From Macrostomum lignano (lineage: Eukaryota): a stretch of 24,980 nucleotides of DNA. Where the stretch lies: contig NIVC01002887.1 in assembly GCA_002269645.1 (NCBI GenBank), positions 1-24,980 on the forward strand, given 5' to 3'. Position numbers and translations under genes: made by a program. The notes under the pieces were generated by a model that was not told where the DNA came from, did no database searches, and saw only the letters and a program-made list of their open reading frames with translations. This document shows, in pieces, positions 1 through 24,900 of the stretch; the first letter of the stretch is position 1; each line of letters opens with the position of its first letter.

Positions 1-286
1 GGTATCTTCTTTGCACAGTGAAAATTCGAAAATAAGAATCACGCGCAAAGCTCGAAAAAGCAGTTCTAAAAGGACTTTCCGGGACAGCAATTCCTTCTGT
101 CACTTTTTGAGGCACTTGAGAGCAAGCATCAACTACTTGAGTCCCAGCTTGACGGATCCTCGTGAACTTCAACAAGACAGAATCAAGAAATAAGAAATTT
201 TCGCGTTTTCAAAAAATACGAACTAAAGCAGTTGCTATGGCTCCTGCTTGTACATAGAAAAAGTTTAATTTTGCTCGTAACGCCAG

Positions 287-453
287 ATCTTCGCGTGTTG
301 TCACTGGCGACGGTCGGGTTGGCAACGGAGCCTGCGAACTGCTTAACCTGCTGGGCTGGAGCGCCTGGCGCCGCAGGACTTTCTGGCCCGCGAGTGGCAG
401 CCGGGCACGCGGGCACGTATACCCAGCTGCCTGCGGACTGGCTGTTCCGCAAG
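287..453 (+). CDS. Internal exon of a stand-alone LKR/saccharopine dehydrogenase-like oxidoreductase (AlaDh/PNT superfamily); frameshifted, and the 5' part of the gene was not identified
   Basis: Stitching frames gives LRV-VVTGDGRVGNGACELLNLLG-LERLAPQDFLAREWQPG-TYTQLPADWLFRK. This has the Rossmann-type TGxGRVxxGA motif and the YTQL segment of SDH-like enzymes. Candidate acceptor cgccag| ends at 286; donor aag|gtctgt starts at 454. About three single-base frame changes are needed. Confidence 0.7.
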
Positions 454-567
454 GTCTGTTTGCTCACAGGTAGCGGCTGCGGATTCCGCCAGTCTCTAGA
501 GCTGATTCCATGCCTCCTGCTAATTCACCTTTATTTAGCTTACTGATTCAGTTTAGGGATTCTACCC

Positions 568-624
<57 letters not shown>

Positions 625-637
625 TTGTCTGTCTGTC

Positions 638-692
<55 letters not shown>

Positions 693-1108
693 TTGTCTGT
701 CTGTCTTTGTCTGTCTGTCTGTCTGTCTGCCTTCGTGTATGTGTGCCTGTCTGTCTTTCTGTCTTACTCTATGCCTGTGTCTGTCTGTCTTAGTGTATGT
801 CTGTCTGCCTTTGCCTGTCTGTTTCTATGTCTGTCTGTCTGTAAGTATATATATCTCTCTCTATCTTCTATTATCCATAATTCTGTCTGTCTACAAAAGC
901 CTCGCATTAAATCAACATATTCTTGTAAATCCGGACATTTAGCCAGCGCACAATTGGCTGATTGCGTGACTACTCAAATCGTCCTGGATATTGTTTCTCT
1001 GAGTCACTGTCAACCCCGGCTCCGGGCTATAGCGGAGGAAAACTGGAAACAATCGTAAAAATGCACGAATTTCAGTACATCGAAATCTGCCCTGCACCCA
1101 TCCGCAAG
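454..1108 (+). other. Predicted GT-AG intron containing a (TCTG)n microsatellite
   Basis: GT at 454-455 and AG at 1107-1108 (ccgcaag|ggc) join LFRK to GPEAGWSVEFFSDPTGY in phase 0. The acceptor is AAG rather than YAG, so the exact 3' boundary is uncertain. Confidence 0.55.
567..893. repeat. (TCTG)n microsatellite, near-perfect to ~730 and degenerate afterwards
   Basis: Directly visible tetranucleotide run; it explains ORFs 510..1058 and 625..942. Confidence 0.97.
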
Positions 1109-1649
1109 GGCCCCGAGGCCGGCTGGAGCGTGGAGTTTTTCTCCGACCCAACCGGCTACCACAGCGTCATTTGGCCGTTCGCCACCAGGGCCAACGTGCT
1201 GATCAACGGCATCTTTTGGGACCACCGCTGCGCCCCGCTGCTCACGCTGAGGACATGCGCCGCCGACTTCGGCATCCAACTTGTCGGCGACATCACCTGC
1301 GACATCGCCCCGGTGGCCTCGCTGCCGTCACTTTACGAGCCACCACGTGGACGACCCATCTTCACCTTCGACCAGCAGCGGTTGCGAGCTGCCCTCCGAC
1401 AATCGAAATATCGACAAAGCCTACGTCGACGTGATGTCGGTTGACAATCTGCCGATCGAACTGCCGCGCGATTCGTCCAGCACCTTCGGCGAGCTCCTCC
1501 TGCCTGCGCCGGGTGGTGCCCGAGATGCTGCTGCCGCACGTGGCCCCGGCGGCTGGCAGCCGCGTGCTTCAAGATGCCACCATCGCCGAAACGGCAAGCT
1601 GACCTCCGCCTATGCCTATCTGCAGGACTATGCCGACGGCGAATGCTGA
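1109..1649 (+). CDS. Last exon of the LKR/saccharopine dehydrogenase-like gene; multiply frameshifted (assembly indels or pseudogene)
   Basis: Stitched translation: EFFSDPTGYHSVIWPFATRANVLINGIFWDHRCAPLLT...IQLVGDITCDIA-PGG..TLRATT-VDDP-IFTFD...VDVMSVDNLPIELPRDSSSTFGELLL..VVPEMLL...SRVLQDATIAE-NGKLTSAYAYLQDYADGEC*. Contains the GIxW, DIxCD, VDNLP.ELP.D and NGKLT..Y.YL motifs of the LKR/SDH-like fold. Stop TGA at 1647-1649. Confidence 0.8.
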
Positions 1650-1816
1650 TTGGGCGGGGTCAGCCGTTTGTGCGAGCCTGGTTTGAGCATGGTTGGGGAA
1701 CTCAATTCAAAATCAATAGGACTTTGCCATTGATGGCTTGTTAATTAATTATGAAAAAATAGTTATCTGAATCTTTGCGTGGGGAGCCTTTAAGTATTTT
1801 AGGGGGGGGTTTAGTG

Positions 1817-1965
1817 TCTCATGGTGAGATTACATTATCTCAGAGGGAGAGTTAAGTATCTCAAGGTGAGATTACATTATCCAGAGGGAGATTTCAACAG
1901 TATCGCATAGTGAGATTACATTATCTTGAGAGAGATTCAAGCATCTCAATGAGATTTTCATGTCC
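1817..1965. repeat. Degenerate 42-44 bp tandem repeat, about 3.5 copies
   Basis: gtgagattacattatc at 1824, 1866 and 1910, and a decayed copy at ~1950. Confidence 0.8.
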
Positions 1966-2430
1966 TAGAGTCAGATTGTAGTATTTCGAAGTCTCACCTT
2001 GCAGTGCAGATCATTTTTGCTTCTCTATATCTGGCGGGTGTTGCGCCCCAGTCTCAGGTTGCCCAATCGATTGTTTCGTGTTTCCCTTGCATGCCTTTTG
2101 ATTTTTCCGAAGTGCAGTGTTAGCTTTTTGCCCCTCGTCAATATGGACGTAGCAGGTTTAGGTTCGGTTTTTGATTGAGCCATGACTAGCACTATATATA
2201 TTCAGCTGTTTTGATTAAGGTGTTTCTTCTTGGGTGTCTCTTTAATCTGAGTAGTCTTGTTTGTTTGCTAAGTATTTTCAAAGTATTCACTTTTTAACAA
2301 ACTGACTGTTCGTTTTTTGCGCAAGTCTTTGTTCGTGTTGTCTTTAGTTCGATCCACACAGTATAAGCGCTTAGCAACGTTCGATTTGCTTCTGTTTACT
2401 GCCCGATTCTCTGACTGCACTGTGACTTAC

Positions 2431-2776
2431 CTTTTCTTAGAAATATAAGAATCGAATAGACTTCCTAGAAACTACCAGAATCGAGCTGGTTTTCCTAGAA
2501 CCTACCAAAAAGTGAACTGGTTTTCCTAGAAACTACCAGAAGTAAACTGGGTTTCCTAGAAGCTACCAGAATTAAACAGGTTTTCCTAGAAACTACCAGA
2601 AATGAATTAGTTTTCCTAGAAACTACCAGAGTTAAACTTGTTTTCCTAGAAACTACCAAAAATTGAGCGCTTTTCCTAGAAACTACCAGAAGGGAACTAC
2701 TTGTTCTAAAAACTACCAGGATTTAACTTGTTTTTCTAGAAACTAACAATCGAGCTGTTTTTCATAAGAAACTACC
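2431..2776. repeat. 30-bp minisatellite, ~12 units, with conserved core TTTTCCTAGAAACTACCAGA and a variable 10-nt linker
   Basis: TTCCTAGAA at 2462, 2492, 2523, 2553, 2583, 2613, 2643 and 2673, with degenerate units at both edges. Confidence 0.95.
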
Positions 2777-3339
2777 GTCGTTTTTTAATCGCGTTATCGA
2801 CAACAAAACAAATAACAATCCATGCAATTTGCTAATAGAAATATTTTTAACTGCTTTCTATGACAACACGGCACTAGGTCGGCCTGCTCTTTTTTTTCTC
2901 CTAGCAATAACCCTGCAGCTTTCGCATTGATCTGCCCTTCTGTTAACACGATTAGCACCTCTTGCTTAATTTTAATCCCCCAAAGTTACAAAAAATCTTT
3001 TCTTTATTCGGTTGAATTCAGTTTTCTGGGCCACTTCACTTCATTTCGCAGTGCACAGGTTGTTCAAGTGTTCTCCAGCTTGTGCCTGCTGGCAATTATT
3101 GAAATGCCCATTTATTTCAGTGGAATAATTTTATTTGTCGGTATTCGACATCAATAATAATTATATATTATTGCGATTCTAATTTTCGCCATCTGCTGTC
3201 TGGGTGCATTGCGCTGCACCTGCACTGCATCTCGGAAACTGCTTGGTTTCTCTTTAAATTTCTACTCATTCTCTGTGGGCACTGCTCTGTTATTTCTCAT
3301 TGTGGTGGGCAGATATTTTGTCTCATTGCAGTCTCTATA

Positions 3340-4050
3340 TCCACTCCCTTCTCATGTGATCTCTGCTCTCTCCATTTCCATTGTGATCTCTGCTCTCTCC
3401 ACTTCCATCTCATCTCTTCTCTGCTCTCTCCACTTCCATCTCATCTCTCTCTCTCTCATCTCATCTCTGCTCTCTCCACTTCCATCTCATCTCTTCTCTG
3501 CTCTCTCCACTCCCATCTCTTCTCTGCTCTCTCCACTCCCATCTCATCTCTGCTCTCTCCACTCCCATCTCATCTCATCTCTGCTCTCTCCACTCCATCT
3601 CATCTTCTCTGCTCTCTCCACTTCCATCTCATCTCTTCTCTGCTCTCTCCACTTCCATCTCATCTCTTCTCTGCTCTCTCCACTCCCATCTCATCTCATC
3701 TCTGCTCTCTCCACTTCCATCTCATCTCTTCTCTGCTCTCTCCACTCCCATCTCATCTTTGCTTAGCTCTCTCCACTCATCTCATCTCATCTCTGCTCTC
3801 TCCACTTCCATCATCTCTTCTCTGCTCTCTCCACTCCCATCTCATCTTTGCTCAGCTCTCTCCACTTCCATCTCATCTCTTCTCTGCTCTCTCCACTCCC
3901 ATCTCTTCTCTGCTCAGCTCTCTTCACTCCCATCTCTTCTCTGCTCTCTCCACTCCCATCTTATCTCTGCTCTCTCCACTCCCATCTCATCTCTGGTCTC
4001 TCCACTGGTCTCATCATCTATGCTATCCACCCGCATTAAATCTTCTCTCA
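3340..4050. repeat. Pyrimidine-rich (CT-rich) degenerate minisatellite, unit ~25-29 bp (ctctgctctctccacttccatctcat)
   Basis: Directly visible; it explains the S/L/H-rich ORFs 3209..3766, 3759..4094 and 3848..4039. Confidence 0.95.
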
Positions 4051-5032
4051 TCTACTCTGTTTTCACACATGTCCCTTTTCATCCCTTCATTTAATCTTAT
4101 CAACTTTATCTTTGTTATTTTCCTGAAACTTCTGAAACTTATATACCTGATTTCTTTTTCTGTAAAGCCCAAGCCGTGACTCAGCCAGTCGGAAATATTT
4201 TTGTCTTGCACTGTCGAGTGTCAGTGCAAGGTTGAACTTTAGCCTCACTGCATGGGCTGGCTGGCTGGCTTTGGCATTTACGTAGTAGGTACGAACTTTA
4301 TTCTAATTGCACGAAGGCCTGCGGGACAGAAATATATTTTTAGCACTGCTGCACGCTTTGCTTGCGCGCGCGCGCAACACTTTGACCTTCACGCGTCTGC
4401 TTCGGAAACGTAATTCAAAACACGGTGCTGCTGGAGGTGCACATATGTAAGCTACATGAAGTTATACAGTACATGCAAACCTTAATTTTGACGCACTAAA
4501 TGTGCGATTATGCAGTTTTTATTGCATAGTAAGTTGGAAAGTTGTAAATGTGTTTATGATGTGGGTTGTCAGAAACAGGTGACGACACTCATTTACAGTG
4601 CGAACTACACTCCTACAGTATGACAAAAGTTACCCAACAGATTTCAGGTTGGAAAATTAACATTTTACAGTGCGTGTAAGATCAAAGTTTCAGAAACAGA
4701 CTGCATGGTCTCTTACTCTCTACATGTAGCTCGAAGTGTACGCCAGCTGAGGCTTGGAAACAATTTTGCCTCTACTGCTAGAAAAAATCCAGCTCAATGG
4801 CTAGGTCTGCTGAGAGTGGAAAGGAGGGATCATGATCATAGATATGAGAGATTGGAATCGGCATTAGAGAAAAGAAAAGATGACAACGCAATTTGTTATA
4901 TTGCGCGTTGGGGTTATTTAGCGCTGGGGCAAACGAGGTAGTACGGAAATGTCTATGGGTGAACTAAAGCGATTGGAATGTAGAATAAGAAAGAATTAGA
5001 ATAAATGAATGCTTTGGTGCTGCTACAATTAG

Positions 5033-5338
5033 CATTAACTGCCCGCTAATTTTGTCCCTCTTTGTCAAGGACAAATGTCTATGGCACAATATAGTAATAC
5101 CCATGCCTTAAGGGCGTTAAAGGGAAAATCAGAGGGCGCCGTTAATGTACTATTAAAGAAGCTTAAAGTATTAAAGTCCTGCAAGCGGGCTTAAATGTAG
5201 TGGGCACGCTAAGTGCCCACACATACATATGTAAGTGCCCAGCGGCACCCGCTGGGCACTTATTCTTGCCTTAATGCCATAGACTACAATTAAGCCCGCT
5301 TGCAGGAAAGAAATATCAAAATTAGCGGGCAGTTAATG
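5033..5338. mobile_element. Nested-palindrome element (non-autonomous, MITE- or Crypton-like)
   Basis: Perfect 22-bp inverted repeat at 5033-5054/5317-5338, inner 18-bp inverted repeat at 5177-5194/5290-5307, and hairpins at 5200-5220 (8-bp stem) and 5232-5262 (14-bp perfect stem). A ~35-bp direct repeat lies at ~5053 and ~5413. Confidence 0.6.
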
Positions 5339-5449: not shown

Positions 5450-6568
5450 CACATTTTTTCACCACCACACCTTTTCACCTTCAATTTTGATCAAAGTCCA
5501 GTTCTAAAAAACTAGCGGAAATTCATGAATTCAGACAATTTAGACTGGGGCCCAGTCTAACCCCAGTTCAAAACATTCTAACCGAAGTAAGGTTTAGCCA
5601 TAGACAAAATTATCCTCAGTCTGAATTGAAGTTCCGCTAGTCTTTAGAACTGGACTTTGATCAAAATTGAACGTGAAAAGGTGTATTACCGCCCCATATA
5701 ACGGGTGTCCCAAAAAAGGGTAACACTTTGTGCGCTCACTGTGAGTGAGCGTTAGGCAGCTATAGCACAGTAATTTAACAGGTCCACAGTAAACATTTGT
5801 AAGTTTTTCCCACAAACACATTGCTGAGTTAAGCTTGAAAAAGCTTTGCATCACAGAGGCGAGTTTCAAATGTTTATTTGCATTTTTTGAGCTTGTAAGT
5901 GTACGCTAGCTTTTCTGCCAAGCTTTGCCATACACAGCTGCCATAGACAATATTTTGCTTTAAAAAATCTTAAGGAGCATAGACTCAGACGGTGTGGTCA
6001 AATACCAGTTTATTTGAAAAATCGTTATTGATTTTTTGAGCTTGTAAGTGTACGCTAGCTTTTCTGCCAAGCTTTGCCATACACAGCTGCCATAGACAAT
6101 ATTTTGCTTTAAAAAATCTTAAGGAGCATAGACTCAGACGGTGTGGTCAAATACCAGTTTATTTGAAAAATCGTTATTGATTTTTTGAGCTTGTAAGTGT
6201 ACGCTAGCTTCTCTGCTAAGCTTTGCCATAGACGGAGGCATGGACAATCTTTTGCGTAAGAAAAATGACAGAGCATGCATAGACTCTGAGACTGATCTAA
6301 CGTTAAAATTTCTTAAACGTTAAGATTGCAGTCTATGGCAGCTGTGTATGGCAAAGCTTGGCAGAAAAGCTAGCGTACACTTCTGTGCTCAATAACTCGC
6401 CTCTGGAGCAATTTTTCGCAACCAAATGTTTGTGGGAAAAACTTACAAATGTTTACTGTGGACCTGTTAAATTACTGTGCTATAGGCCTAGCTGCTCACT
6501 CACAGTGAGCGCACAAAGTGTTACCCTTTTTTGGGACACCCGTATAGCTAGTGGTGATTGGTGAAAAA
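5450..6568. mobile_element. Older palindromic element interrupted by the 5702-6542 MITE
   Basis: Inverted arms at 5468-5520 and 5632-5683 (caccttttcac.ttcaattttgatcaaagtccagttctaaa...). The outermost left-arm sequence acattttttcaccaccac (~5450-5468) finds its partner only after the insertion, at ~6550-6568 (gtggtgattggtgaaaaatgt). There is a central hairpin at 5541-5559. Confidence 0.6.
5702..6542. mobile_element. TA-flanked MITE with long terminal inverted repeats (Tc1/mariner-like termini)
   Basis: Termini cgggtgtcccaaaaaagggtaacactttgtgcgctcactgtgagtgagc and its exact reverse complement; arms pair for ~120 bp. The ends are flanked by tata(a) and tata. Internal inverted pair at 5892-5948/6331-6382, and an internal ~149-bp tandem unit present ~2.4 times (5880-6235). 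Confidence 0.8.
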
Positions 6569-7635: not shown

Positions 7636-9006
7636 TCAGAAAACCTCCAGCCTATAGCGCGGCACATCGGCCACATCATCGTCCAGGGTGAGCAGGAACA
7701 GGAAGCTGAAGAAGATGGCCGCGGAGCTGGCAAAGTGCCATAGATCGTGCGCGTCAAAGAAGCCCAGAGCCGCGCAGGGCCGGTTGCGCGCCGAGCGGGA
7801 CTGCGCGGGCGACAGCTTCCAGTCTGTCGGCGACAGCGAGAACTGCCACAGCGCCACGCCCCAGGCCGCCAGCGCCACCGTCAGGCAGAAAGTCGACGCC
7901 GACGCTGCGGCGATGGTTGATCCCACCGAGCGGTGCACCTCGCAACGCGGAGTTCGAGCCCAGGACTGCAGCTTCTTAGCCAGGTAGTAGGCCAAGTAGC
8001 AGGCGGTGTTGGTGAGCAGGCAGGCCAGCAGCAGCAGGCTGTAGGAGGCCGACATCACCGGGGCGGAGCCTCGACCAGCAAAGTAGGCGGCGGCGAAGAC
8101 GGCTGCCGACTCGGAGAGCCAGATGCAGCCGTAGGCGACTTCAGCTGGGCTGACGCTGCCGCGGCAGCTGCGCAGCCGGGCGCACCGGACGGCCACAACG
8201 GCAACTGGCGGCGTCAGCAGCAGCAGGCCGGTGGCGGCGAAGACCGCGGCTCGAATCGCGGGCTCAGAATTGACGGACGAGCCGAGCGAGTTCAGCAGCA
8301 GCAGGCCGGCGATGGCCAAGCAGCCCCAGTGCGCCGGCGGCCGCAGTCCGGGACGCCGTTTCGCCAGCACCAGCAGCGCCAGCAGCGACGCCAGCACCAG
8401 CATGAAGGCGGTGTCGAATTGGAAGCTGGCGGCGCTGGGGCACAGGTGGTAGCCAGCCGACAGCAAGCCCTCAACGCACATGCACAGTCCGGAGGCAAAG
8501 TGCAGGCCGTGGCTGTGCGGTACGCCGAACTTGCCGCCGCTGTCAACCGCTAATTGTCGCCGTCTCGCTAACCGGCGCGCCTTCATTGAGCGCCGGTGCA
8601 CCAGAGTGCAAATTAGAAAAGTGACACCAAGAATTGCGTAGCCAATGTTGGAGAACACGCTGTTGGAGGCGTAGATCACGTGGCCCAGCACCGTGACAGG
8701 CAGCAGGCAGGCGAAGTTGTAGTAGCAGAGGTCCTGGTCGCCGGACTCGTGCAGCAGCCGTTGGCTGGACATCACCAGCTGCAGAGCCGGCAGGCAGAAG
8801 AAGACCGCTGCCACCGCGGCGTGGACGCAGTACCGAGTCTGCCGACGGCCGTCTGCCGCGTCCACCGCGTCGCTGATGACGTCTTCGAGGCTGACAACGC
8901 CATCCGGCAGTGGCCGACAGGTGCAGAGCTGGCTCTGGTCGACTGTGTCCACTGGCGTGTCGCGTACTGGTGATCCGAGTTCGTAGTTGGCTTCTGGTGA
9001 TGTTCT
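7636..9006 (-). CDS. sid-1: SID-1/SIDT family transmembrane protein, exon 2 (multi-pass membrane domain)
   Basis: Uninterrupted ORF with SIDT signatures: FFCLPALQLV, GDQDLCYYNFAC, NSVFSNIGYAILG, GLCMCVEGLLSAGYHLCPSAASFQFDTAFM, W..SPAQSR..NRPC..LGFFDAHDLWHFASS, and the C-terminal LLTLDDDV...R..L.VF*. Phase-0 acceptor ccttcaag|aga at 9007/9006. Confidence 0.93.
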   Translation of the reverse strand, partial: RTSPEANYELGSPVRDTPVDTVDQSQLCTCRPLPDGVVSLEDVISDAVDAADGRRQTRYCVHAAVAAVFFCLPALQLVMSSQRLLHESGDQDLCYYNFACLLPVTVLGHVIYASNSVFSNIGYAILGVTFLICTLVHRRSMKARRLARRRQLAVDSGGKFGVPHSHGLHFASGLCMCVEGLLSAGYHLCPSAASFQFDTAFMLVLASLLALLVLAKRRPGLRPPAHWGCLAIAGLLLLNSLGSSVNSEPAIRAAVFAATGLLLLTPPVAVVAVRCARLRSCRGSVSPAEVAYGCIWLSESAAVFAAAYFAGRGSAPVMSASYSLLLLACLLTNTACYLAYYLAKKLQSWARTPRCEVHRSVGSTIAAASASTFCLTVALAAWGVALWQFSLSPTDWKLSPAQSRSARNRPCAALGFFDAHDLWHFASSAAIFFSFLFLLTLDDDVADVPRYRLEVF

Positions 9007-10900
9007 CTTGAAGGTATGATTTTTATAGTGCAGGCATGCATTTGAATTCAAGCTGGGGTGAGATTTCAGGGCTGAGAGTGAGCTTGCAGAGCTGGGAGTG
9101 AGATTGCAGAGCTGAGAGTGAGATTGTAGAGCTGGGAGTGAGTTTGCAGAGCTGAGAGTGAGATTGTAGAGCTGGGAGTGAGATTGCAGAGCTGAGAGTG
9201 AGATTGTAGAGCTGGGAGTGAGATTGCAGAGCTGAGAGTGAGATTGTAGAGCTGGGAGTGAGATTGCAGAGCTGAGAGTGAGATTGTAGAGCTGGGAGTG
9301 AGATTGCAGAGCTGAGAGTGAGATTGTAGAGCTGGGAGTGAGATTGCAGAGATGAGAGTGAGATTGCAGAGCTGAGAGTGAGATTGCAGAGCTGAGAGTG
9401 AGATTGCAGAGCTGAGAGTGAGATTGTAGAGCTGAGAGTGAGATTGCAGAGCTGAGAGTGAGATTGCAGAGCTGAGAGTGAGATTGCAGAGCTGAGAGTG
9501 AGATTGCAGAGCTGAGAGTGAGATTGCAGAGATGAGAGTGAGATTGCAGAGCTGGGAGTGAGATTGCAGAGCTGAGAGTGAGATTGCATCTCTGAGTGAG
9601 ATTGCAGAGATGAGAGTGAGATTGCAGAGCTGAGAGTGAGATTGCAGAGCTGAGAGTGAGATTGCAGAGCTGAGAGTGAGATTGTAGAGCTGGGAGCGAG
9701 ATTGCAGAGCTGAGAGTGAGATTGTAGAGCTGGGAGCGAGATTGCAGAGCTGAGAGTGAGATTGTAGAGTTGGGAGTGAGATCGCAGAGCTGAGAGTGAG
9801 ATTGCAGATCTGGGAGTGAGATTGCAGAGCTGGGAGTGATATTGCAGATCTAAGAGTGAGATTGCAGATCTGGGAGTGATATTGCAGATCTAAGAGTGAG
9901 ATTGCAGATCTGAGAGTGAGATTGCAGAGCTGGGAGTGATATTGCAGATCTAAGAGTGAGATTGCAGATCTGGGAGTGATATTGCAGATCTAAGAGTGAG
10001 ATTGCAGATCTGAGAGTGAGATTGCAAAGCTGGGAGTGAGATAATTGCAGATCTGGGAGTGAGATTGCAGATCTAAGAGTGAGATTGCAGATCTGGGAGT
10101 GAGATTGCAGATCTGGGAGTGAGATTGCAGATCTGGGAGTGAGATTGCAGATCTGGGAGTGAGATTGCAGATCTGGGAGTGAGATTGCAGATCTGGGAGT
10201 GAGATTGCAGATCTGGGAGTGAGATTGCAGATCTGAGAGTGAGATTGCAAAGCTGGGAGTGAGATTGCAGATCTGGGAGTGAGATTGCAGATCTAAGAGT
10301 GAGATTGCAGATCTGGGAGTGAGATTGCAGATCTGGGAGTGAGATTGCAGATCTGGGAGTGAGATTGCAGAGCTGGGAGTGATATTGCAGATCTAAGAGT
10401 GAGATTGCAGATCTGGGAGTGATATTGCAGATCTGGGAGTGAGATTGCAGATCTGAGAGTGAGATTGCAAAGCTGGGAGTGAGATTGCAGATCTGGGAGT
10501 GAGATTGCAGATCTGGGAGTGAGATTGCAGATCTGGGAGTGAGATTGCAGATCTGGGAGTGAGATTGTAGAGCTGGGAGCGAGATTGCAGAGCTGAGAGT
10601 GAGATTGCAGATCTGGGAGTGAGATTGTAGAGCTGGGAGCGAGATTGCAGAGCTGAGAGTGAGATTGTAGAGCTGGGAGTGAGATTGCAGAGCTGAGAGT
10701 GAGATTGTAGAGCTGGGAGCGAGATCGCAGAGCTGAGAGTGAGATTGTAGAGCTGGGAGTGAGATCGCAGAGCTGAGAGTGAGATTGCAGATCTGGGAGT
10801 GAGATTGCAGAGCTGGGAGTGAGATTGCAGATGAAGGCCATGAAAAAGATGACACACTGTCCTTTCTGTATCTACTTTAGTATTGAAGCCGCGAATTTAC
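9007..10900 (-). other. Predicted intron of the SID-1-like gene
   Basis: Donor gcg|gtaaat at 10901/10900 and acceptor AG at 9008-9007 keep phase 0 between the two ORFs. The acceptor is AAG, so the boundary is approximate. Confidence 0.7.
9055..10830. repeat. 20-bp minisatellite, ~88 units, consensus GAGATTG(C/T)AGA(G/T)CTG(G/A)GAGT
   Basis: Directly visible; it explains all the LQSHSQLCNLT-type ORFs between 9023 and 10857. Confidence 0.99.
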
Positions 10901-11858
10901 CGCCTTATTCCGATCAGCAACCGCCGCAGGGCCTGGCGCCTTCCAGCAGATGCGCGCGCACACGGGCGCCAGCAGGAGCAGCAGGAGGAGGCAGCCGGCT
11001 GTCAGAGCCACGGGCAGGCTGGCCGCGTGAACTGGCAGCGACTGGACAGTCAGGCTGAAATTCGTCTGGCCGCCGCCGACATCGCTAATTCCGGTGTCCA
11101 AGATGCCGCACTGGCCGCCCCCGTCAGGAAAAGTCCGGACAGTCAGGAAAAATGTCGATAGCGTGGAATTTGCGCTTCGAATTGTGGCGGCGGCTGCACT
11201 GACTAGAAGGTAGCCGCTGCCTGTCAGGGTCTGCGCACTGATGACGCTGCTTCCCGAGTCGCTCAGCGGACATCGAGCCTGATGCAGCTGTACCAGAGCG
11301 CAGCGAATCGACGGCGCCGCTCTGAAGGCCAGCCGCCACGCTGTTTGGAGCGCCGCTGGACCTGACGGCACGCGAATCGCCAGCAGTTGCGGAGAATCCG
11401 CCGATTCCACCGTGAAACTGACGCTGGAGCCCGGAGTCACGGTGAAGTCCGACATCAGCTGGCCGGAGAACTCAACCAGCACCGGCCGGGCAGACTGGGT
11501 AGCGATGGTCAGCGTCAGCAGCTCCCAGTCTGTCGCCAGCTCAAATTCTCTGCTCAAACTCATTGGAGGGCAAAGCGTCCTAGCAACGGTTGCCAATGGC
11601 GCTGTAATTATCCAAGATTCGACAGACTCTCTGTGCTGCAGGCCAATCAGAACTGGCGCGACAGCTGAGGCATTCGGCGACATGACTCGGAGTCTGAAGG
11701 CCGCATCGAGAAGCTGCTCAGCCGGTATGGAGAACTCGGCCTGGTACGGCCTGAGTCGGGAGATAACAGCTGTGTGCGCTTCATCAATGGATGCAGACTC
11801 AGATGGAACCCAGCTGACTAATAGAAGTACTAGCCGCGATAAAACGAAAGGGACGCAT
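10901..11858 (-). CDS. sid-1: SID-1/SIDT family protein, exon 1 (signal peptide, extracellular beta domains, first TM helix); a 1-bp indel near the start is inferred
   Basis: The frame of ORF 10877..11683 stays open upstream (VLSRLVLLLVSWVPSESA, signal-peptide-like). An ATG at 11858 (MRPF) lies one base out of frame. Extracellular-domain pattern RLRV....A.APVL...HRESV.SW and C..VQL....CP..D......QTLT...V...FFLTV...D...CG, followed by the TM segment LPVALTAGCLLLLLLLAPVC. The joined protein is ~775 aa, a normal size for the family. Confidence 0.8.
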
Positions 11859-12818: not shown

Positions 12819-13784
12819 GGGCCATAGACAAAAAGGGCATTGAAAGGAGAGAGGGGTTACCGAGGAGAGAGAGACATAAAGACTGAGGTGGTTTACTGGA
12901 GTTTGGGCCATAGACAACGAAGTTGCAAACAGGCTGGGGGTTAAGAGGGTGGAAAGGAAGGAGATGTGGAGAGAAAGAGAGAATAAAACGTAAATAGCTA
13001 CATTCGCTTGGCCATGGAGAACCAGACGTCATATCCGATCAACTGGGGCAATATGCCTGTCGAAAGTTTAGCCAACGTATCTAGCAGCGAACTCAATTGG
13101 ATCTCAAGACTTTCCACATCTCAGAAGGACATGAAGGATAACGAAGACTTTTTGAACTTCTTGCACTTTCTTGAGACCTGGAATCGGCTGGGCATTCGAT
13201 GAGCGAGATCATGGCTATCACGGGTCAAAAGTCCGAGAGCACGGTCCGGCGCTACCTGGCAGTTAAACGGGACAAGTCCCTGCAACAATGCAGCGATGCA
13301 GTGTCGCGTGCGTTGAACATGGGACAAAGCGCCGCGACCCACGGTCAAGTAACAATGCCTGCTGACATCAGCATCCAAAGTTCCATCGTGCAAGAAGCAG
13401 TGAGCGTGTCTGATGGTCGTCAGATGAACGATCGGAATATCTTTATTATGAACAACTGCACTTTCAACAATTGCAATCTGTAATGGTCTTCGGCACTATG
13501 ACAATTGCGCCATATTGATATTGCACAATTAACTTTCCATAGCGCTAATCTTTTGTTGTTGGTGTTTGCTGTTTTGTTCTAAAAATAGGCGTCCATTATC
13601 CCGAGTTTGAAATCATTATCCTGAAGTTTAAGTGAAAAAAATAAATAAATGTGCTCATGGTTTAACCATAGACGATTGCATTATCCTAAAGGCTGATTTT
13701 TGACAATGCTGGGACTCGATCGCATTGGCCATGCAGGTACAGAGGGGACTTGTGCAGGGGATTCTTGCGGTGGCGAGTCTATGG
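12819..13784 (+). mobile_element. Crypton-like (tyrosine recombinase) DNA transposon, internally deleted derivative; boundaries approximate
   Basis: A tyrosine recombinase remnant inside; CCATAGAC direct repeats at 12822, 12908 and 13666, plus an inverted copy at 13777; no long TIRs around the ORF; an A-rich aataaa at ~13640. Confidence 0.6.
13014..13483 (+). pseudogene. Truncated Crypton/DUF3504-type tyrosine recombinase
   Basis: The N-terminal part LANVSSSELN.ISR....KDNEDF resembles the ELxxxLSRF...KDGEDY start of Crypton recombinases. After a 1-base frameshift at ~13198, LGI.MSEIMAITGQKSESTVRRY matches the box II pattern G....IM..TGH(K/R)S..S...Y. The C-terminus MNNCTFNNCNL* is typical of the family. 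The central R/HxxR region is absent. Confidence 0.7.
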
Positions 13785-17471: not shown

Positions 17472-18028
17472 TCCCCCAGAAAGCAAGCATCCCCCAGACA
17501 GCAAGCATAAGCAAACATCCCCCAGACAGCAAGCAATCCCCTCAGACAGCAAGCATTCCTCAGACAGCAAGCATTCCTCAGACAGCAAGCATTCCTCAGA
17601 CAGCAAGCATTCCTCAGACAGCAAGCATTCCTCAAACAGCAAGCATTCCTCAGACAGCAATCATTACTCAGACAGCAAACATCCCCCAGACAGCAAGCAA
17701 TCCCCTCAGACAGCAAGCATTCCTCAGACAGCAAGCATTCCTCAGACAGCAAGCATTCCTCAAACAGCAAGCATTCCTCAGACAGCAATCATTACTCAGA
17801 CAGCAAACATCCCCCAGACAGCAAGCAATCCCCTCAGACAGCAAGCATTCCTCAGACAGCAAGCATCCCCCAGACAGCAAGCATTCCTTAGACAGCAAGC
17901 ATTCCCTAGACAGCAAGCATTCCTCAGACAGCAAGCATCCCCCAGATAGCAAGCATCCCCCAGACAGCAAGCATTCCTCAGACAGCAAGCATTACTCAGA
18001 CAGCAAGCATAAGCAAGCATTTCTCAGA
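17472..18028. repeat. 18-bp minisatellite (CAGACAGCAAGCATTCCT), ~30 units, with higher-order blocks
   Basis: Directly visible. The variant marker aaacatcccccag recurs at 17513, 17677 and 17805. It explains ORFs 17454-18020. Confidence 0.97.
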
Positions 18029-18482: not shown

Positions 18483-18842
18483 TCCATGGGCCTAATACAC
18501 AGTTGCATATAATACTTCAACGCTTTTAAAGTGCACTGGCTGATATCTCTCTTTTATACAAAAAAGCATGTTTTCGAATACACGTATTTAATTACTTATA
18601 GAGAGTAGCATTAGCTCAAGAAGTTGAAGTTTAGTCTATGGCCATAGTTATATTGAGCTCTCACTATGAGAAAAATACACTAATTAGATAGGGAAAATAT
18701 AGTTTTCCAAATATTTAACCATCTTCCCATTCGATTTTATCAATGCAATTACATCCACACAATCTCACAAGAATTTCCGAATGAATAAAGCAAGTTTGAA
18801 AAAAATTGGTTCAGGCTTCAGGCTATAGACTGAAATACCAGT

Positions 18843-18912
18843 CAGACAGACAGACAGACAGACAGACACACAGACAGAGAGACAGTCAATAGACAGACAG
18901 AACGACAGACAA

Positions 18913-18973
<61 letters not shown>
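18843..18973. repeat. (GACA)n microsatellite
   Basis: Directly visible. Confidence 0.97.
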
Positions 18974-21018
18974 TCTAAGAGATTTAGTATATTATGATGA
19001 TTTACAAAATTTATGCACACAAGCACTCACTCACACACAAAGCAAAGTGAATGTGGCATCCCCGCGGCTTGCTTTTTAACATTCAACTTCGGACCACCAC
19101 TTGCATGTGTATATGTGATTGCTTGCATGCGTAAATTCTGCAAATATAATGCTATATTTGTGACAACCTTGTGTTAAAATTATGTCAACATTGGTTGAAA
19201 TATCTTTCTTTTTTTAAATGAAGGATAAAAAATTATCCAATGTATTTTGAAAAGTGCAAAGTTACTAAGGGCAAATGCATTGCCCTCGGGTAATAAGGGC
19301 AAGGACAAAGAGACAGATCCCCTGTATTTCTCTGCAAATTGTCAAAACTCTGTTTTATTAAATACTACACAACTCTGTTTTGCTCTATAAAAAGGAATCA
19401 GAAAATATTCTGACAGACCAACTTGTTCTTGGTGTTGCAACTTGCAATTTTTGCTGATGCAAAACTTTTTGCTTTTGCTTTTGCTTTTGCCTATCCAAGT
19501 TTTAAAAATAGCATATTCATCAATGCCTTATTTCTTAGTCATTCTGCCCCTTGTCCCTAGGAAACATCCTGTCTAATAGGGGCATGTTGCCTCTTCCCTT
19601 CTCCTCAAGGCATATAGGCCTGAATAAGGCATCTTGCCTATCTTCCCCCCCCCCTCAGATGTGCTGTCTTCCTAGGTGTTTTGCTTATCCCCAGATATAC
19701 TGTCTCCCTAGGTGTCTTGCCTTATCCCCATAGATGTTCTGCTGTCTCCAAGGCTAGGCATCTTTCCTAACCTTAGACCTCTATCCATAAGGCATTTTGT
19801 CTCTTTCCCAATTCCCTATTGTTGTGACTGTGTTACTGTTTAGTGTACAAAGTGTATGAAGCATGCGTGATTGCTAAGTCATACAACCATTAGATTCGCT
19901 CTGTTAGGTCAGGTTGTACCTGCGTTTTCCCACTCTCTCATCAATGTACAGCTAGAACCTGCTAAGGCCAATGAGGATTGAGGAGGCCCTAAAGGCCAGG
20001 AAATAATACAGTAGGCCTATGCTTTGTTCCCAAATGGGGGCAAGTATTGTTTCTTTGGAGACATAGGTCAAAGAACCTGGCTCTCTTCCAAGTCTTAATT
20101 TTGTGCCCAGCACAGTTGGAATACCTATTAGACATTCTGCCCTTACTGCTAAAATTCCCCAAGAAAAGTGTCCCTTTGTAAGAGATTTTAGTGGCATGAT
20201 GGGCATCACAATTTGCTATTTGCTTATTGCCTATTAGTATCAATAAATATTTTTAAATTACTACACAACAGAAGTTTTAAAAGGGGATTGAAAAAGATAA
20301 AATGGTTCAATCTAAATAGTAAGGAATCGAATCATAAAAAGAAGACCTAGCCAAACCAACTTATTCCATAGAATTAAACAAACACAAAGGCTCTCTGCCA
20401 ACCCCCTCCATTTTATCGATTGGTTTGGGATAGAGGGAGGGGGTTGCATTCTGCTGCGTACACAATAACCCCTCTTTTTTGACTTGGGGCTATAGAGTTT
20501 TTTGTCCTACTCGTGTATAGGGTCATTAAACCTATTGATCACACTCATGGCCTATCCAATAGTGATTGACTTATTAGAGATAGAGGCAAGGAAAATGAAG
20601 GAAAGTCTAGAAAGATCAACCCTGCAGTCTACTAGACTTAGTGGTTTTGAAGAGTTGAAATGCCTTTGGCTTTCAGCTTAGGCCTAATTAAAATTAAGTG
20701 GACCTAGACTGCATGGGATACAGTGCATGATTTTGCTTTGATTTTAGCTCTTGCTCTTTAATTTCTTATTCTAAAAGTGATAAAAAAAACTGTCAGCAAC
20801 CAACTCTCAATGCATTTTGGTGAGTTTTTTTTTATAAAATAAATGTGATTTATATTAGTAGTTATAGCTTATTAAAATTAAATACCATTTCTCACCTAAT
20901 TTGGTCCTACAAATAGTCGATATAGTTCTAAATAAAGATACAAACTCTAGGAGTCTCAGGTTCTATACTATAGCTAAAATTTTCTTTGCATTCCAACTAG
21001 AGGAATAGAATAATAGAA

Positions 21019-23599: not shown

Positions 23600-24900
23600 T
23601 GGCATCCTACTCTTGGTTAAAATCTGACCCCTCTTATTTTTTCTCCGAGATCTGCAAGTAGTTCTTAGGTGAAAAAGCTGCCATCATTTTTCATCTCAGA
23701 GAGAGGCCTTCCATTTTGGTAATGGTTAGGACCTGTATTAGAATCAAGATCATACTTCTCAATTCAATGCCATGTTTCTGAAGATTTCTGGGGAATTATC
23801 ATCAGTATACTAAGGTGATTTTCATAAGTTCTTAACAAAAGAAAGGCAACACAGTTTTTTATGAGCCTGCTTGTGTAGTAATTATTGCAACATTTGTCAA
23901 AATAGCTTTGAACAAGTGCAATAGGTGTGTCAATGATGTGCACAATGTCAGTTTCAGCATGGTATATTAGTCCTTTCAAGTCCATTTGTAGCAATTGTGA
24001 CAACGGTGCAATTGCACCATGGTGATGTTGATGACATTGGTGACTTGTCAGGTATATTGTGTCTTTAGACTCTACCAGTATTTGACGAGCACCAGTCACC
24101 TACAACTGGAAGCTGATATCTATAGTCGAGTCTGGGCAGCTGTCTGGCTTAAGGATCAAGCTGCATATCCTGCTCTGGCTACCTGGAAACTGGTCATATC
24201 GGTCGATGGACAGTTTGTTGGTGAAGACAGCAAGTGAGTTGTCATATGCACACCAAAAGTGCTGCCGCTTGATGCTTGGAACTTGAAATGAAGACAGAGA
24301 CTCAGTCATGAGTTCTGCCAGATCTCTTAACAAAAACACTCACCTCTGGCTGTGAACATCTTATCTACTCAATCGTTAAGCATAAGCAGTTCCAGAATCT
24401 TCTTTTTTGAGATGCAGTAGGTCTCACTCAATCTTACACACTCATCTGCACTATTAACTGCTGCATTCTGACAATCACTCTGCCTCACCTTAACTAGCTT
24501 CCAAACAAACCGTTTCAGTGTGCCTCCGGCTCCATCGATCGCGCCCTTACCGTGAGACGTGGCAAAAAAGAGTTCAATGCCAGCCTCTTCAGATTGAACT
24601 TGACACGAGTGACTGCGAGTTACCTTTGGCGAATCAGTTCTTGAATTGAGAAGCAGGCTCGTCACTCCTTGAAGTGAATCGTCATACCAGTCTTGTTAAA
24701 AGCAGCGCTGAATTTTTTAACATTCTATTGTCTAAATTGTCCGTGTCAATTAAATTTAGGAATAATATCCTTGCAAGTTTTTTCTTAAGAGTAAAATGAG
24801 TCAGTGCTCGGACTCAAATCTGTGATCGTGTTCACTCGCGGTTGTTTATTTACTTGTACAGTATCATTTTTAACTCTTTGTATCACTAGCTACTGCTACC
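23600..24900 (-). pseudogene. Degenerate DDE/D-type DNA transposase (HGKGxxDG family; superfamily not firmly assigned, possibly Sola-type)
   Basis: SD(E)PASQFKN* at 24666-24637 matches the SDGxxxQ(F/Y)KN motif. In another frame FFATSHGKGAIDGAGGTLKR lies at ~24570-24510, and VPSIKRQHF (like IPGT...HxF) lies further downstream. Stops and frameshifts occur throughout. Confidence 0.75.

Follow-up and report, generated by a model that had tools for sequence, protein, structure and literature searches.

The lysine-2-oxoglutarate reductase of animals (LKR or LOR, EC 1.5.1.8) is part of the bifunctional protein AASS, in which it is fused to a saccharopine dehydrogenase (SDH), and in human AASS the residues Ser266 and Arg267 have been linked to NADPH binding (PMC9490328). 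The fungal counterpart Lys1 (EC 1.5.1.7; structures 2Q99 and 3UGK) is a biosynthetic and NAD-dependent enzyme. Bacteria, mostly Bacteroidota and some cyanobacteria, carry single-domain AlaDh_PNT-family proteins of ~400 aa, whose names in the source databases conflict: ‘NAD(P)-dependent oxidoreductase’, ‘alanine dehydrogenase’ and ‘saccharopine dehydrogenase (NAD+, L-lysine-forming)’ are all in use. Metabolic genes are known to have passed from bacteria to animals in bdelloid rotifers, plant-parasitic nematodes and insects. So far, few well-documented cases concern a transferred gene that is intact, carries introns, has been duplicated and is transcribed.

RNAi is in use in the flatworm Macrostomum lignano. 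Transgenesis also works in this animal (PMC5730564), so the function of a domesticated bacterial enzyme would be directly testable there. Here we describe a locus in a 24 980-nt stretch of M. lignano DNA (contig NIVC01002887.1, forward strand; hereafter the window) that is probably a functional nuclear gene for a 433-aa stand-alone LKR/LOR-like enzyme, horizontally acquired from bacteria and now domesticated and intact. Such an origin of this gene was not reported in the literature that we searched (the gene, its Mlig identifiers and horizontal transfer in Macrostomum).

Results

The window holds exons 2 and 3 of a three-exon gene on the forward strand and carries only its 3′ 55%, codons 196–433 (Table 1). 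Its first base corresponds to position 20159 of the same locus in the polished Mlig_3_7 assembly (L005, contig NIVC01002490.1), inside a 947-bp intron at 19497–20443 in the exact splice model of PAA57440.1. Exon 1 lies farther upstream, outside the window, and encodes both the Lys/His motif and the AlaDh_PNT_N domain. A first-pass annotation made from the window alone had placed a whole gene with one intron at 287–1649; exons 2 and 3 are indeed located there, but it is exon 2 that begins at 287, and the gene itself starts upstream and has two introns. The GT-AG intron filled with a microsatellite, which the same annotation had noticed, is intron 2, and the motifs, frame end and junction that it described are all present in the sequence: VVTGDGRVGNGA (297–332) with the dinucleotide-binding glycine motif TGDGRVGNGA (303–332, exon 2), YTQL, TLRATT/VDDP and VDVMSVDNLPIELPRDSS, several of them split across frames by indels, and a reading frame that terminates with ...NGKLTSAYAYLQDYADGEC. 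Exon 2 ends in AAG/GT and exon 3 starts at AAG/GG (slash, splice junction), the alignment to bacterial homologues crosses this 453/1109 junction without loss of a residue, and the same junction is found in the NCBI model PAA57440.1, which the exon coordinates reproduce exactly with two GT-AG introns in phases 1 and 0. The spliced model (433 aa) is 100% identical to UniProt A0A1I8I4M3. The protein was also proposed to stand alone, and tblastn with six bifunctional LKR/SDH proteins (880–1004 aa) matched through their LKR parts only and showed no downstream SDH exon and no SDH-domain homology in the window, in L005 or in a further copy of the locus (L004). Rfam and tRNA scans of the window gave no matches. 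The similarity of the gene product to its database homologues is far beyond chance, with E=1.5e-56 for the peptide stitched from the window and 8e-111 for the full protein.

Table 1. Features of the LKR-like gene and its SID-1 neighbour, in window coordinates
Feature	Position	Strand	Remarks
3′ end of intron 1	1..286	+	Phase 1; acceptor AG 285–286; AT-rich, no homology to protein
Exon 2, codons 196–252	287..453	+	tblastn with P0001; L004/L005 comparison; splice model
Direct repeat TCCGCAAGG, upstream copy	446..454	+	Exon 2/intron 2 boundary; read from sequence
Intron 2	454..1108	+	Phase 0; GT 454–455, AG 1107–1108
(CTGT)n microsatellite, about 72 units	567..842	+	Tandem Repeats Finder; inside intron 2
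Direct repeat, downstream copy	1101..1109	+	Intron 2/exon 3 boundary; TCCGCCAAGG in polished assemblies
Exon 3, codons 253–433 and stop codon	1109..1649	+	TGA 1647–1649; tblastn, L004/L005 comparison, splice model
SID-1 family dsRNA channel gene	7636..11848	−	Pfam PF13965, E=8e-80; two large exons matching P0121 at 11848–10892 and 9006–7741

By sequence and predicted fold, the gene product is a member of the LKR (LOR)/Lys1 branch of the AlaDH/PNT superfamily. Residues 18–150 of the protein (P0124), encoded by exon 1, match PF05222 (AlaDh_PNT_N) above the curated cut-off (E=6e-20); the stitched window-only peptide gave no Pfam or NCBIfam match, because this diagnostic N-terminal domain lies outside the window. 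A sequence search of the PDB returned the human AASS LKR domain 8DDA over residues 17–428 (E=2.5e-38), and the AlphaFold model (pLDDT 88.8) was matched by Foldseek to human AASS 8E8U with a TM score of 0.80 (E=6e-35), followed by weaker fold matches to yeast Lys1 (0.62–0.66), AlaDH (about 0.58) and transhydrogenase dI (about 0.5). Twenty-two bacterial homologues have 79 invariant columns, of which the flatworm protein keeps 70, and the TGDGRVGNGA pattern is invariant across 24 sequences. Also invariant are K87 and H105 of GVK...FSHTIK, a motif that aligns with its counterpart in human AASS; judged by motif and spacing, they would be the equivalents of yeast K77 and H96, as given in the yeast reference cited in PMC9490328.

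The biochemical function would hence be that of a saccharopine-forming reductase or a related opine-type enzyme. A less probable but substantial alternative is that the bacterial-derived enzyme is not a lysine-2-oxoglutarate reductase, but an opine-type synthase that joins another amino acid with a keto acid, or some other amino-acid dehydrogenase, in which case the divergent paralogues described below may differ in substrate or form a hetero-oligomer. The members found of the bacterial ~400-aa clade carry no experimental annotation to set beside their discordant names, and they have no conserved operon partner: across 60 bacterial loci with 118 flanking ORFs we found no recurrent SDH or aldehyde dehydrogenase, and the most frequent neighbour was SAICAR synthetase (8 of the 118). 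Moreover, both flatworm paralogues have changed five columns that are otherwise invariant in bacteria, namely the position directly following the conserved Lys (E to P/A) and four others, which may have altered substrate specificity; at the positions that align with human Ser266/Arg267 the protein has Pro-Ala. On the other hand, the human LOR domain, and after it yeast Lys1, lead the other matches by far in sequence and structure, and both are lysine/saccharopine enzymes, while alanine dehydrogenases match only weakly in sequence (E about 1e-3) as in fold. We thus favour the LKR-like reading.

The ancestry of the gene was examined with neighbour-joining trees only. After the two M. lignano paralogues, the best matches are all bacterial or metagenomic (42–48% identity; named ones from Saprospiraceae, Lewinellaceae, Chitinophagales and Pleurocapsales), and overall the protein is 42–49% identical to stand-alone bacterial proteins of ~400 aa, mostly from Bacteroidota. 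In GTDB genomes 591 matching loci were found, nearly all in Bacteroidota with some in cyanobacteria, and the closest homologues lie in compact bacterial gene contexts. The main tree contained 126 sequences, including eukaryotic bifunctional AASS-type proteins, with bacteria sampled as 50%-identity representatives. In this tree the M. lignano pair was monophyletic in 200 of 200 bootstraps and was nested inside the ~400-aa bacterial type in all 200 as well. Further runs of 100 bootstraps recovered the nesting 99 times, 97 times with the metagenomic protein P0001 removed, and 100 and 99 times after Dayhoff-6 recoding. A sister relation of the pair to P0001 had 91% support with amino acids and 17% after Dayhoff recoding; we discarded P0001 as sister or donor because of this loss, the grouping may be a GC-composition artefact, and no donor is named.

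Vertical descent, in which an ancient eukaryotic stand-alone LKR-like gene was kept in Macrostomum and lost almost everywhere else, has two observations in its favour. One is an ORF of the ~400-aa type, with an 85-residue N-terminal extension, in the EukProt transcriptome of Rhizamoeba saxonica, so that the family is not exclusively bacterial. The other is a narrow tree of top-hit bacteria and human AASS, in which 71% of bootstraps placed the flatworm branch outside the bacteria sampled, between them and AASS; as this set of sequences seemed too narrow, the 50%-identity representatives were used in its place. With the broader sampling, however, the flatworm pair is nested in bacteria in 97–100% of bootstraps and the amoeba ORF is not its sister; that ORF could come from bacterial prey or from a separate transfer. 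Furthermore, neither the 120 top-scoring clusters nor the named members of 20 representative clusters included a homologue from any other animal, be it another Macrostomum species or a different flatworm, or from any other eukaryote. The first-pass annotation had likewise assigned the protein to the bacterial type and not to AASS. We consider vertical descent improbable, and on these sequence comparisons the M. lignano gene is a well-supported case of bacterium-to-animal transfer.

The coding sequence in the window is heavily frameshifted, with 14 or more indel events that break the frame within 708 bases, which could suggest a decaying pseudogene, a dead relic of the transfer with real frameshift mutations. 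The composition of these differences argues against this. Exon 2 is 167 nt long in the window and 170 nt in the polished locus (single bases missing after 296, 355 and 402), and exon 3 is 541 versus 546 nt (10 bases missing, 5 extra), so that the exons show no substitutions but 18 indel bases (13 missing, 5 extra), 15 of which are in homopolymer context. Over positions 1–5086 the window differs from L005 by two adjacent mismatches and 89 indel bases (67 missing, 22 extra), and these differences cease abruptly after about position 4000, whereas genuine copies of the locus differ by 0.3–5% substitutions. Both L004 and L005 contain an intact 1302-nt CDS, and the polished Mlig_3_7 locus, in which the frameshifts noted at first pass are absent, encodes the intact 433-aa protein identical to the annotated transcript-based models. 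One UniProt model, A0A1I8JJA4, has the same out-of-frame peptide GAPGAAGLSGPRVAAG as exon 2 of the window, and its remainder is identical to the intact protein. Errors of this type are documented for the PacBio-only ML2 assembly, in which base calls are less accurate and fewer ORFs are intact than in the Pilon-polished Mlig_3_7 (PMC5730564). The frameshifts in the window are therefore indel errors of an unpolished long-read assembly and require no biological explanation; the real gene is intact, and a pseudogene is very unlikely. The pseudogene-like appearance thus comes from the assembly, and intact genes of this type will be under-called when unpolished long-read assemblies are scanned.

The GC-rich exons of the gene (59–68% GC) lie in a background of roughly 40% GC, as would be seen if contamination or a chimeric join had put bacterial DNA beside an animal gene. 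We regard this as hardly credible, since the ORF is interrupted in frame by two GT-AG introns, and the neighbouring SID-1 exons are equally GC-rich (GC3 of 0.80 in the neighbouring SID-1 exon and 0.78 in the LKR-like gene). SID-1, which had been placed 6 kb away, is convergent with the LKR-like gene at about that distance; its homology spans 7741–11848 on the minus strand, its terminal ORF extends past 7741 to a stop at 7636, and the ORF shares 98% identity with M. lignano BOX15_Mlig005979g1. The same arrangement, with the 6-kb linkage, is found again on an independent contig of 353 kb (NIVC01000111.1), whose sequence is genuinely divergent, and the tandem pair of paralogues is present on three contigs (353, 103 and 701 kb). 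In addition, the nearest bacterial protein is just 48–49% identical. The gene is presumably transcribed, as the Mlig_3_7 gene models were derived from RNA-seq and transcriptome assembly (PMC5730564). Finally, an origin from the LKR domain of the animal's own bifunctional AASS, by truncation or duplication, can be dismissed, although the best solved-structure match is human AASS LKR: the protein stands apart from the AASS-type group in the tree, lacks the AASS-specific insertions as bacteria do, and is 31% identical to AASS, no closer than bacterial proteins are (mean 31%).

In addition to the second intron and the upstream exon, the earlier description is extended by a divergent tandem paralogue (430 versus 433 aa) that is 57% identical to the first. 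One intron, at codon 195/189, occupies the same aligned column in phase 1 in both paralogues, and the other three introns are paralogue-specific. Intron 2 is one of these; it is missing from the P0125-type paralogue, whose exon 3 covers the homologous position. It is 655 nt long in the window, 656 in L005 and 571 in L004, and the (CTGT)n array is found in all three with different lengths. A direct repeat flanks intron 2, reading TCCGCAAG/G at the donor and TCCGC(C)AAG/G at the acceptor, and among the five introns examined no other is flanked in this way; the probability of a chance match was estimated at about 1–2%, allowing for the splice consensus and the five introns. A search for signs of a transposon origin revealed neither terminal inverted repeats nor another copy of the intron in 74 kb of M. 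lignano sequence (window, L004 and L005). When L004 and L005 are compared, their 1302-nt CDS shows 4 substitutions (0.3%; 3 synonymous and 1 non-synonymous, small numbers) and no indels, as against 1–5% substitutions and 87 gap bases in the introns; coding sequence is thus conserved more strongly than introns.

Discussion

We infer the direction and donor of the transfer, as well as the substrate, cofactor and cellular role of the enzyme, from the comparisons above. In the model that we favour, the ancestor would be a bacterial stand-alone homologue of ~400 aa, most likely from a Bacteroidota-like donor, which entered the genome by horizontal transfer and then took on host-like codon composition. 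One intron would have been gained before the tandem duplication, and the further paralogue-specific introns, including the microsatellite-bearing intron 2, after it. The first-pass view of an old, domesticated bacterial gene is consistent with this order, being supported by the bacterial nesting, the intron shared by the paralogues and the host-like GC3. The enzyme would catalyse the NAD(P)H-dependent reductive condensation of the ε-amino group of L-lysine with 2-oxoglutarate to saccharopine, or the reverse; it would work without a fused saccharopine dehydrogenase and, from a reading of its N-terminus, may sit outside mitochondria.

A more far-reaching and rather unlikely version of this model is offered as speculation. 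In it the captured stand-alone gene gained at least four introns and was duplicated, intron 2 arose by an insertion or repair event that left the direct repeat, and the pair provides an AASS-independent route to saccharopine, pipecolate or opine-type products, for example in the osmotic or redox balance of an intertidal flatworm. Because the bacterial ancestor had no introns, each intron in the gene is a dated gain, and the locus, with one intron common to the paralogues and three specific to one of them, is a small natural experiment on intron origin.

Compared with known systems, the gene is closest to the bacterial ~400-aa proteins, with which it shares the single domain without SDH fusion, the 42–49% identity over the full length and the same pattern of indels relative to AASS. 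It differs from them in its location in an animal nucleus, its spliceosomal introns and tandem duplication, and its protein has about 14 extra residues at the N-terminus and four short lineage-specific insertions found in both paralogues, besides the five altered columns. With the animal AASS LKR/LOR domain it shares the two-lobe Rossmann fold, end-to-end alignability and the GVK...FSHTIK and DNLP motifs, but at 31% identity it lacks the SDH fusion and the AASS insertions, has Pro-Ala in place of Ser266/Arg267, the human residues in contact with the NADPH phosphate, and, by eye, appears to have no obvious mitochondrial presequence. Fungal Lys1 is likewise stand-alone and of the same superfamily; its sequence similarity is confined to the N-terminal half (E about 3e-13), however, and it is not the closest clade to the flatworm protein. 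Among other bacterium-to-animal transfers, the locus resembles earlier cases in that it has gained introns and host-like codon use, has been duplicated and is backed by transcript evidence, whereas the recipient here is a free-living flatworm.

Gene structure in the window and on polished contigs

All-frame translation of window positions 1–2400 matched a single protein family, in two blocks on the forward strand that fall in three frames and correspond to exons 2 and 3 of the studied gene. The 655-bp spacer between them begins with GT, ends with AG and carries ∼72 CTGT units at 567–842. The reading frame stops at TGA 1647–1649, preceded by ...NGKLTSAYAYLQDYADGEC, and the AT-rich sequence upstream of exon 2 has no homology and ends in AG. 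Exon 1 (codons 1–195), which encodes a Pfam-recognisable AlaDh_PNT_N domain and the conserved Lys/His motif, lies outside the window, and because of this Pfam and NCBIfam scans of the window-only peptide matched no model. The gene models of the polished assembly Mlig_3_7 are based on RNA-seq and a de novo transcriptome (PMC5730564), thus the 453/1109 junction has transcript-level support via the annotation models. The coordinates, motifs, splice junction and SID-1 neighbour given in the first-pass annotation were all correct, as judged by reading of the window, translation and homology.

Coordinates of the studied gene, of its model on NIVC01002490.1 (L005) and of the neighbouring SID-1 gene
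Feature	Location	Strand	Remarks
Intron 1 (3′ part)	window 1–286
Exon 2	window 287–453	+
Intron 2	window 454–1108
Exon 3	window 1109–1649	+
PAA57440.1 exons on L005	18911–19496, 20444–20613, 21270–21815		exact model, three exons
PAA57440.1 intron 1 on L005	after codon 195		947 bp, phase 1, GT–AG
PAA57440.1 intron 2 on L005	after codon 252		656 bp, phase 0, GT–AG
SID-1 gene	window 11848–10892 and 9006–7741, stop at 7636	−	match to SID-1 protein P0121; Pfam PF13965, E=8e-80

Origin of the frameshifts

On NIVC01000111.1 (353 kb, L004) the homology forms three blocks of one frame each, with frameshifts absent, and splicing these blocks at GT–AG gives a CDS of 1302 nt, whose 433-aa product shows 100% identity to A0A1I8I4M3, a separate UniProt entry (P0124, the intact protein of the studied gene). 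Comparison of L005 with window 1–5086 showed 2 adjacent mismatches, 67 bases absent from the window and 22 extra. All 91 differences (89 indel bases) lie within 1–4000 and none in 4001–5086, with a peak of 34 in 3001–3500 inside a 31-bp tandem repeat. This pattern suggests that the consensus is locally poor, as it might be close to the end of a contig or where coverage is low. The two exons show 0 substitutions, 13 missing bases and 5 extra ones, 15 of these 18 in homopolymer context, whereas the true copies L004 and L005 differ by substitutions at 0.3% in exons and 1–5% in introns. Therefore the window and L005 represent the same DNA, the window sequence containing indel errors, and the window is not a diverged or decayed copy. 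Both the UniProt model A0A1I8JJA4, which has the out-of-frame exon 2 peptide of the window and elsewhere agrees fully with the intact protein, and the fact that ML2, an earlier PacBio-only assembly, is less accurate at base level and contains fewer intact ORFs than its Pilon-polished reassembly Mlig_3_7 (PMC5730564) fit this reading. A decayed relic is rejected, because the CDS differs between copies by 4 substitutions (3 synonymous) and 0 indels, against dozens of changes in the introns.

Residence in the host genome

The SID-1 gene is convergent with the studied gene and lies ∼6 kb downstream of it; its terminal ORF extends to the stop codon at 7636. The SID-1 ORF shares 98% identity with a protein of Macrostomum lignano, and L004 is the contig of that protein. 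On L004 an AlaDh_PNT_N gene is located 6 kb past SID-1, convergent as in the window. GC3 is 0.78 for the studied gene and 0.80 for the adjoining SID-1 exon, and the SID-1 exons (7636–9051 and 10877–11683, reverse strand) have a GC content of 61–65% and GC3 up to 0.80 in surroundings of ∼40% GC; hence high exon GC is characteristic of the host and does not indicate foreign DNA. The gene and its tandem paralogue occur as a pair on three contigs (353, 103 and 701 kb, by cluster membership), in agreement with the redundancy known for the DV1 genome (PMC5730564). Contamination is thus rejected by the two in-frame spliceosomal introns, the GC3 equal to that of SID-1, the SID-1 linkage on an independent diverged contig and the tandem pair on three contigs, and these features together with the conservation of the CDS point to a resident gene, probably one under purifying selection.

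In SID-1, 89 copies of a 20-bp unit (AGCTGGGAGTGAGATTGCAG; 9051–10831) fill the intron that separates the two large exons, an array of ∼1.8 kb in the window and ∼1.0 kb in L004 that yields long spurious ORFs on the reverse strand. Mini- and microsatellites are dense in intergenic and intronic DNA (2462–2776, 3340–3994, 5882–6255, 17510–18010 and 18839–18973; units of 30/90, 31, 149 and 18/128 bp and (CAGA)n), consistent with the repeat-rich genome of M. lignano. No Pfam match was obtained for the short ORFs at 13199–13483 (+), 24369–24665 (−) and 23764–24099 (−), which may be mobile-element remnants or chance ORFs.

Tandem paralogue and intron history

The paralogue P0125 (BOX15_Mlig019856g3, M. 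lignano) has 430 aa and four exons, is 57% identical to P0124, and its gene lies in L005 10001–15289, in tandem and 3.6 kb upstream of the P0124-type gene. Its introns follow codons 70 (phase 0), 189 (phase 1) and 332 (phase 0). The codon-189 intron coincides in alignment column and phase with intron 1 of P0124 (R/G versus R/D), so this shared intron predates the duplication, and the other three introns, intron 2 of the window included, are each confined to one paralogue. Given a bacterial ancestor free of introns, the most parsimonious history is one intron gain, then duplication, then three further gains. P0124 and P0125 also have in common four small insertions that no bacterial sequence in the alignment shows.

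A direct repeat borders intron 2, with TCCGCAAGG on the donor side (446–454) and TCCGC(C)AAGG on the acceptor side (1101–1109); the splice boundaries are TCCGCAAG/G and TCCGC(C)AAG/G, and the ORF is restored when the intron is removed together with one copy of the repeat. Among the five introns of both paralogues only this one is so flanked. The repeat is a possible footprint of intron gain, of the kind that an insertion or the repair of a staggered break would leave; neither inverted termini nor a second copy of intron 2 was found in 74 kb of M. lignano sequence, so we offer this origin as a lead.

Probable bacterial ancestry

After the two flatworm paralogues, the best 120 clusters were all bacterial or metagenomic at 42–48% identity, the named ones being Saprospiraceae, Lewinellaceae, Chitinophagales and pleurocapsalean cyanobacteria, and the two closest homologues sit in compact bacterial gene contexts. 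In GTDB genomes 591 matching loci were found, nearly all in Bacteroidota. A tree of the top hits and AASS alone was ambiguous, the sampled bacteria grouping to the exclusion of the flatworm in 71% of bootstraps. A wider NJ tree of 126 sequences was built from an exhaustive search of 50%-identity representatives, which also included eukaryotic bifunctional AASS-type proteins of 880–1115 aa, one of them from MMETSP. In this tree the flatworm pair was monophyletic in 200/200 bootstraps and nested within the ∼400-aa bacterial type, also in 200/200; nesting recurred in further NJ runs (99/100, and 97/100 without the metagenomic homologue P0001) and with Dayhoff-6 recoding (100/100 and 99/100). This nesting, and an identity to the human AASS LKR of 31%, the same as that of the bacterial proteins, bear out the bacterial affinity proposed in the first-pass annotation. 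Support for P0001 as sister fell from 91% to 17% on recoding, and P0001 and the flatworm gene are both GC-rich (GC3 of 0.89 and 0.78); hence we would place the donor no closer than ‘Bacteroidota-like’.

In 20 representative clusters close to the flatworm branch, the named members were bacterial or metagenomic with one exception, P0216, a 490-aa ORF of the ∼400-aa bacterial type with an 85-residue N-terminal extension, from a transcriptome of the amoebozoan Rhizamoeba saxonica (EukProt). In the NJ tree it is not the sister of the flatworm pair, and it represents either a separate transfer or contamination by bacterial prey. Some marine Flavobacteriales-like bacteria encode P0275 (metagenomic, 1052 aa; some cluster members named Schleiferiaceae), a protein with an apparent fusion of the LKR-like domain, at residues 2–397, to a segment annotated in part of the cluster as M3 metallopeptidase (Dcp).

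Predicted function and comparison with known enzymes

The best match of P0124 among solved structures by sequence was the human AASS LKR/LOR domain (E=2.5e-38, residues 17–428). Much weaker were yeast Lys1, with an E of about 3e-13 and a match confined to the N-terminal half, and alanine dehydrogenases, with an E of about 1e-3. The AlphaFold model (pLDDT 88.8, pTM 0.89) gave TM scores of 0.80 to the AASS LOR structure 8E8U, 0.62–0.66 to Lys1 and about 0.58 to AlaDH. The glycine-rich dinucleotide motif and the Lys/His pair of GVK...FSHTIK are conserved, and of 79 columns invariant in 22 bacterial homologues, 70 are retained in P0124 and 69 in P0125. From this sequence and fold match and the kept motifs and columns, the enzyme would most likely carry out the NAD(P)H-linked condensation of lysine and 2-oxoglutarate to saccharopine, or the reverse. 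Human Ser266/Arg267 have been assigned to the NADPH phosphate (PMC9490328); the aligned positions are Pro-Ala in the flatworm protein and do not point to a cofactor preference. Bacterial gene neighbourhoods gave no functional clue.

The absence of an SDH domain after the stop codon also held, no SDH-domain exon being found in the window, L004 or L005, and the product is predicted to be a stand-alone enzyme. The proteins are already public, labelled ‘hypothetical’ or ‘AlaDh_PNT_N domain-containing’, and a literature search found no paper on the gene or on a horizontal origin for it. Transfer from bacteria to animals is a known phenomenon, of which this gene is an additional, well-supported case. 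The flatworm protein resembles LKR/LOR-type enzymes in predicted fold and putative function. However, animal AASS carries SDH fused to LKR, whereas the flatworm protein lacks this fusion and is placed outside AASS in the trees; membership of animal AASS is thus rejected on both counts, and by descent the gene belongs to an uncharacterised bacterial stand-alone clade.
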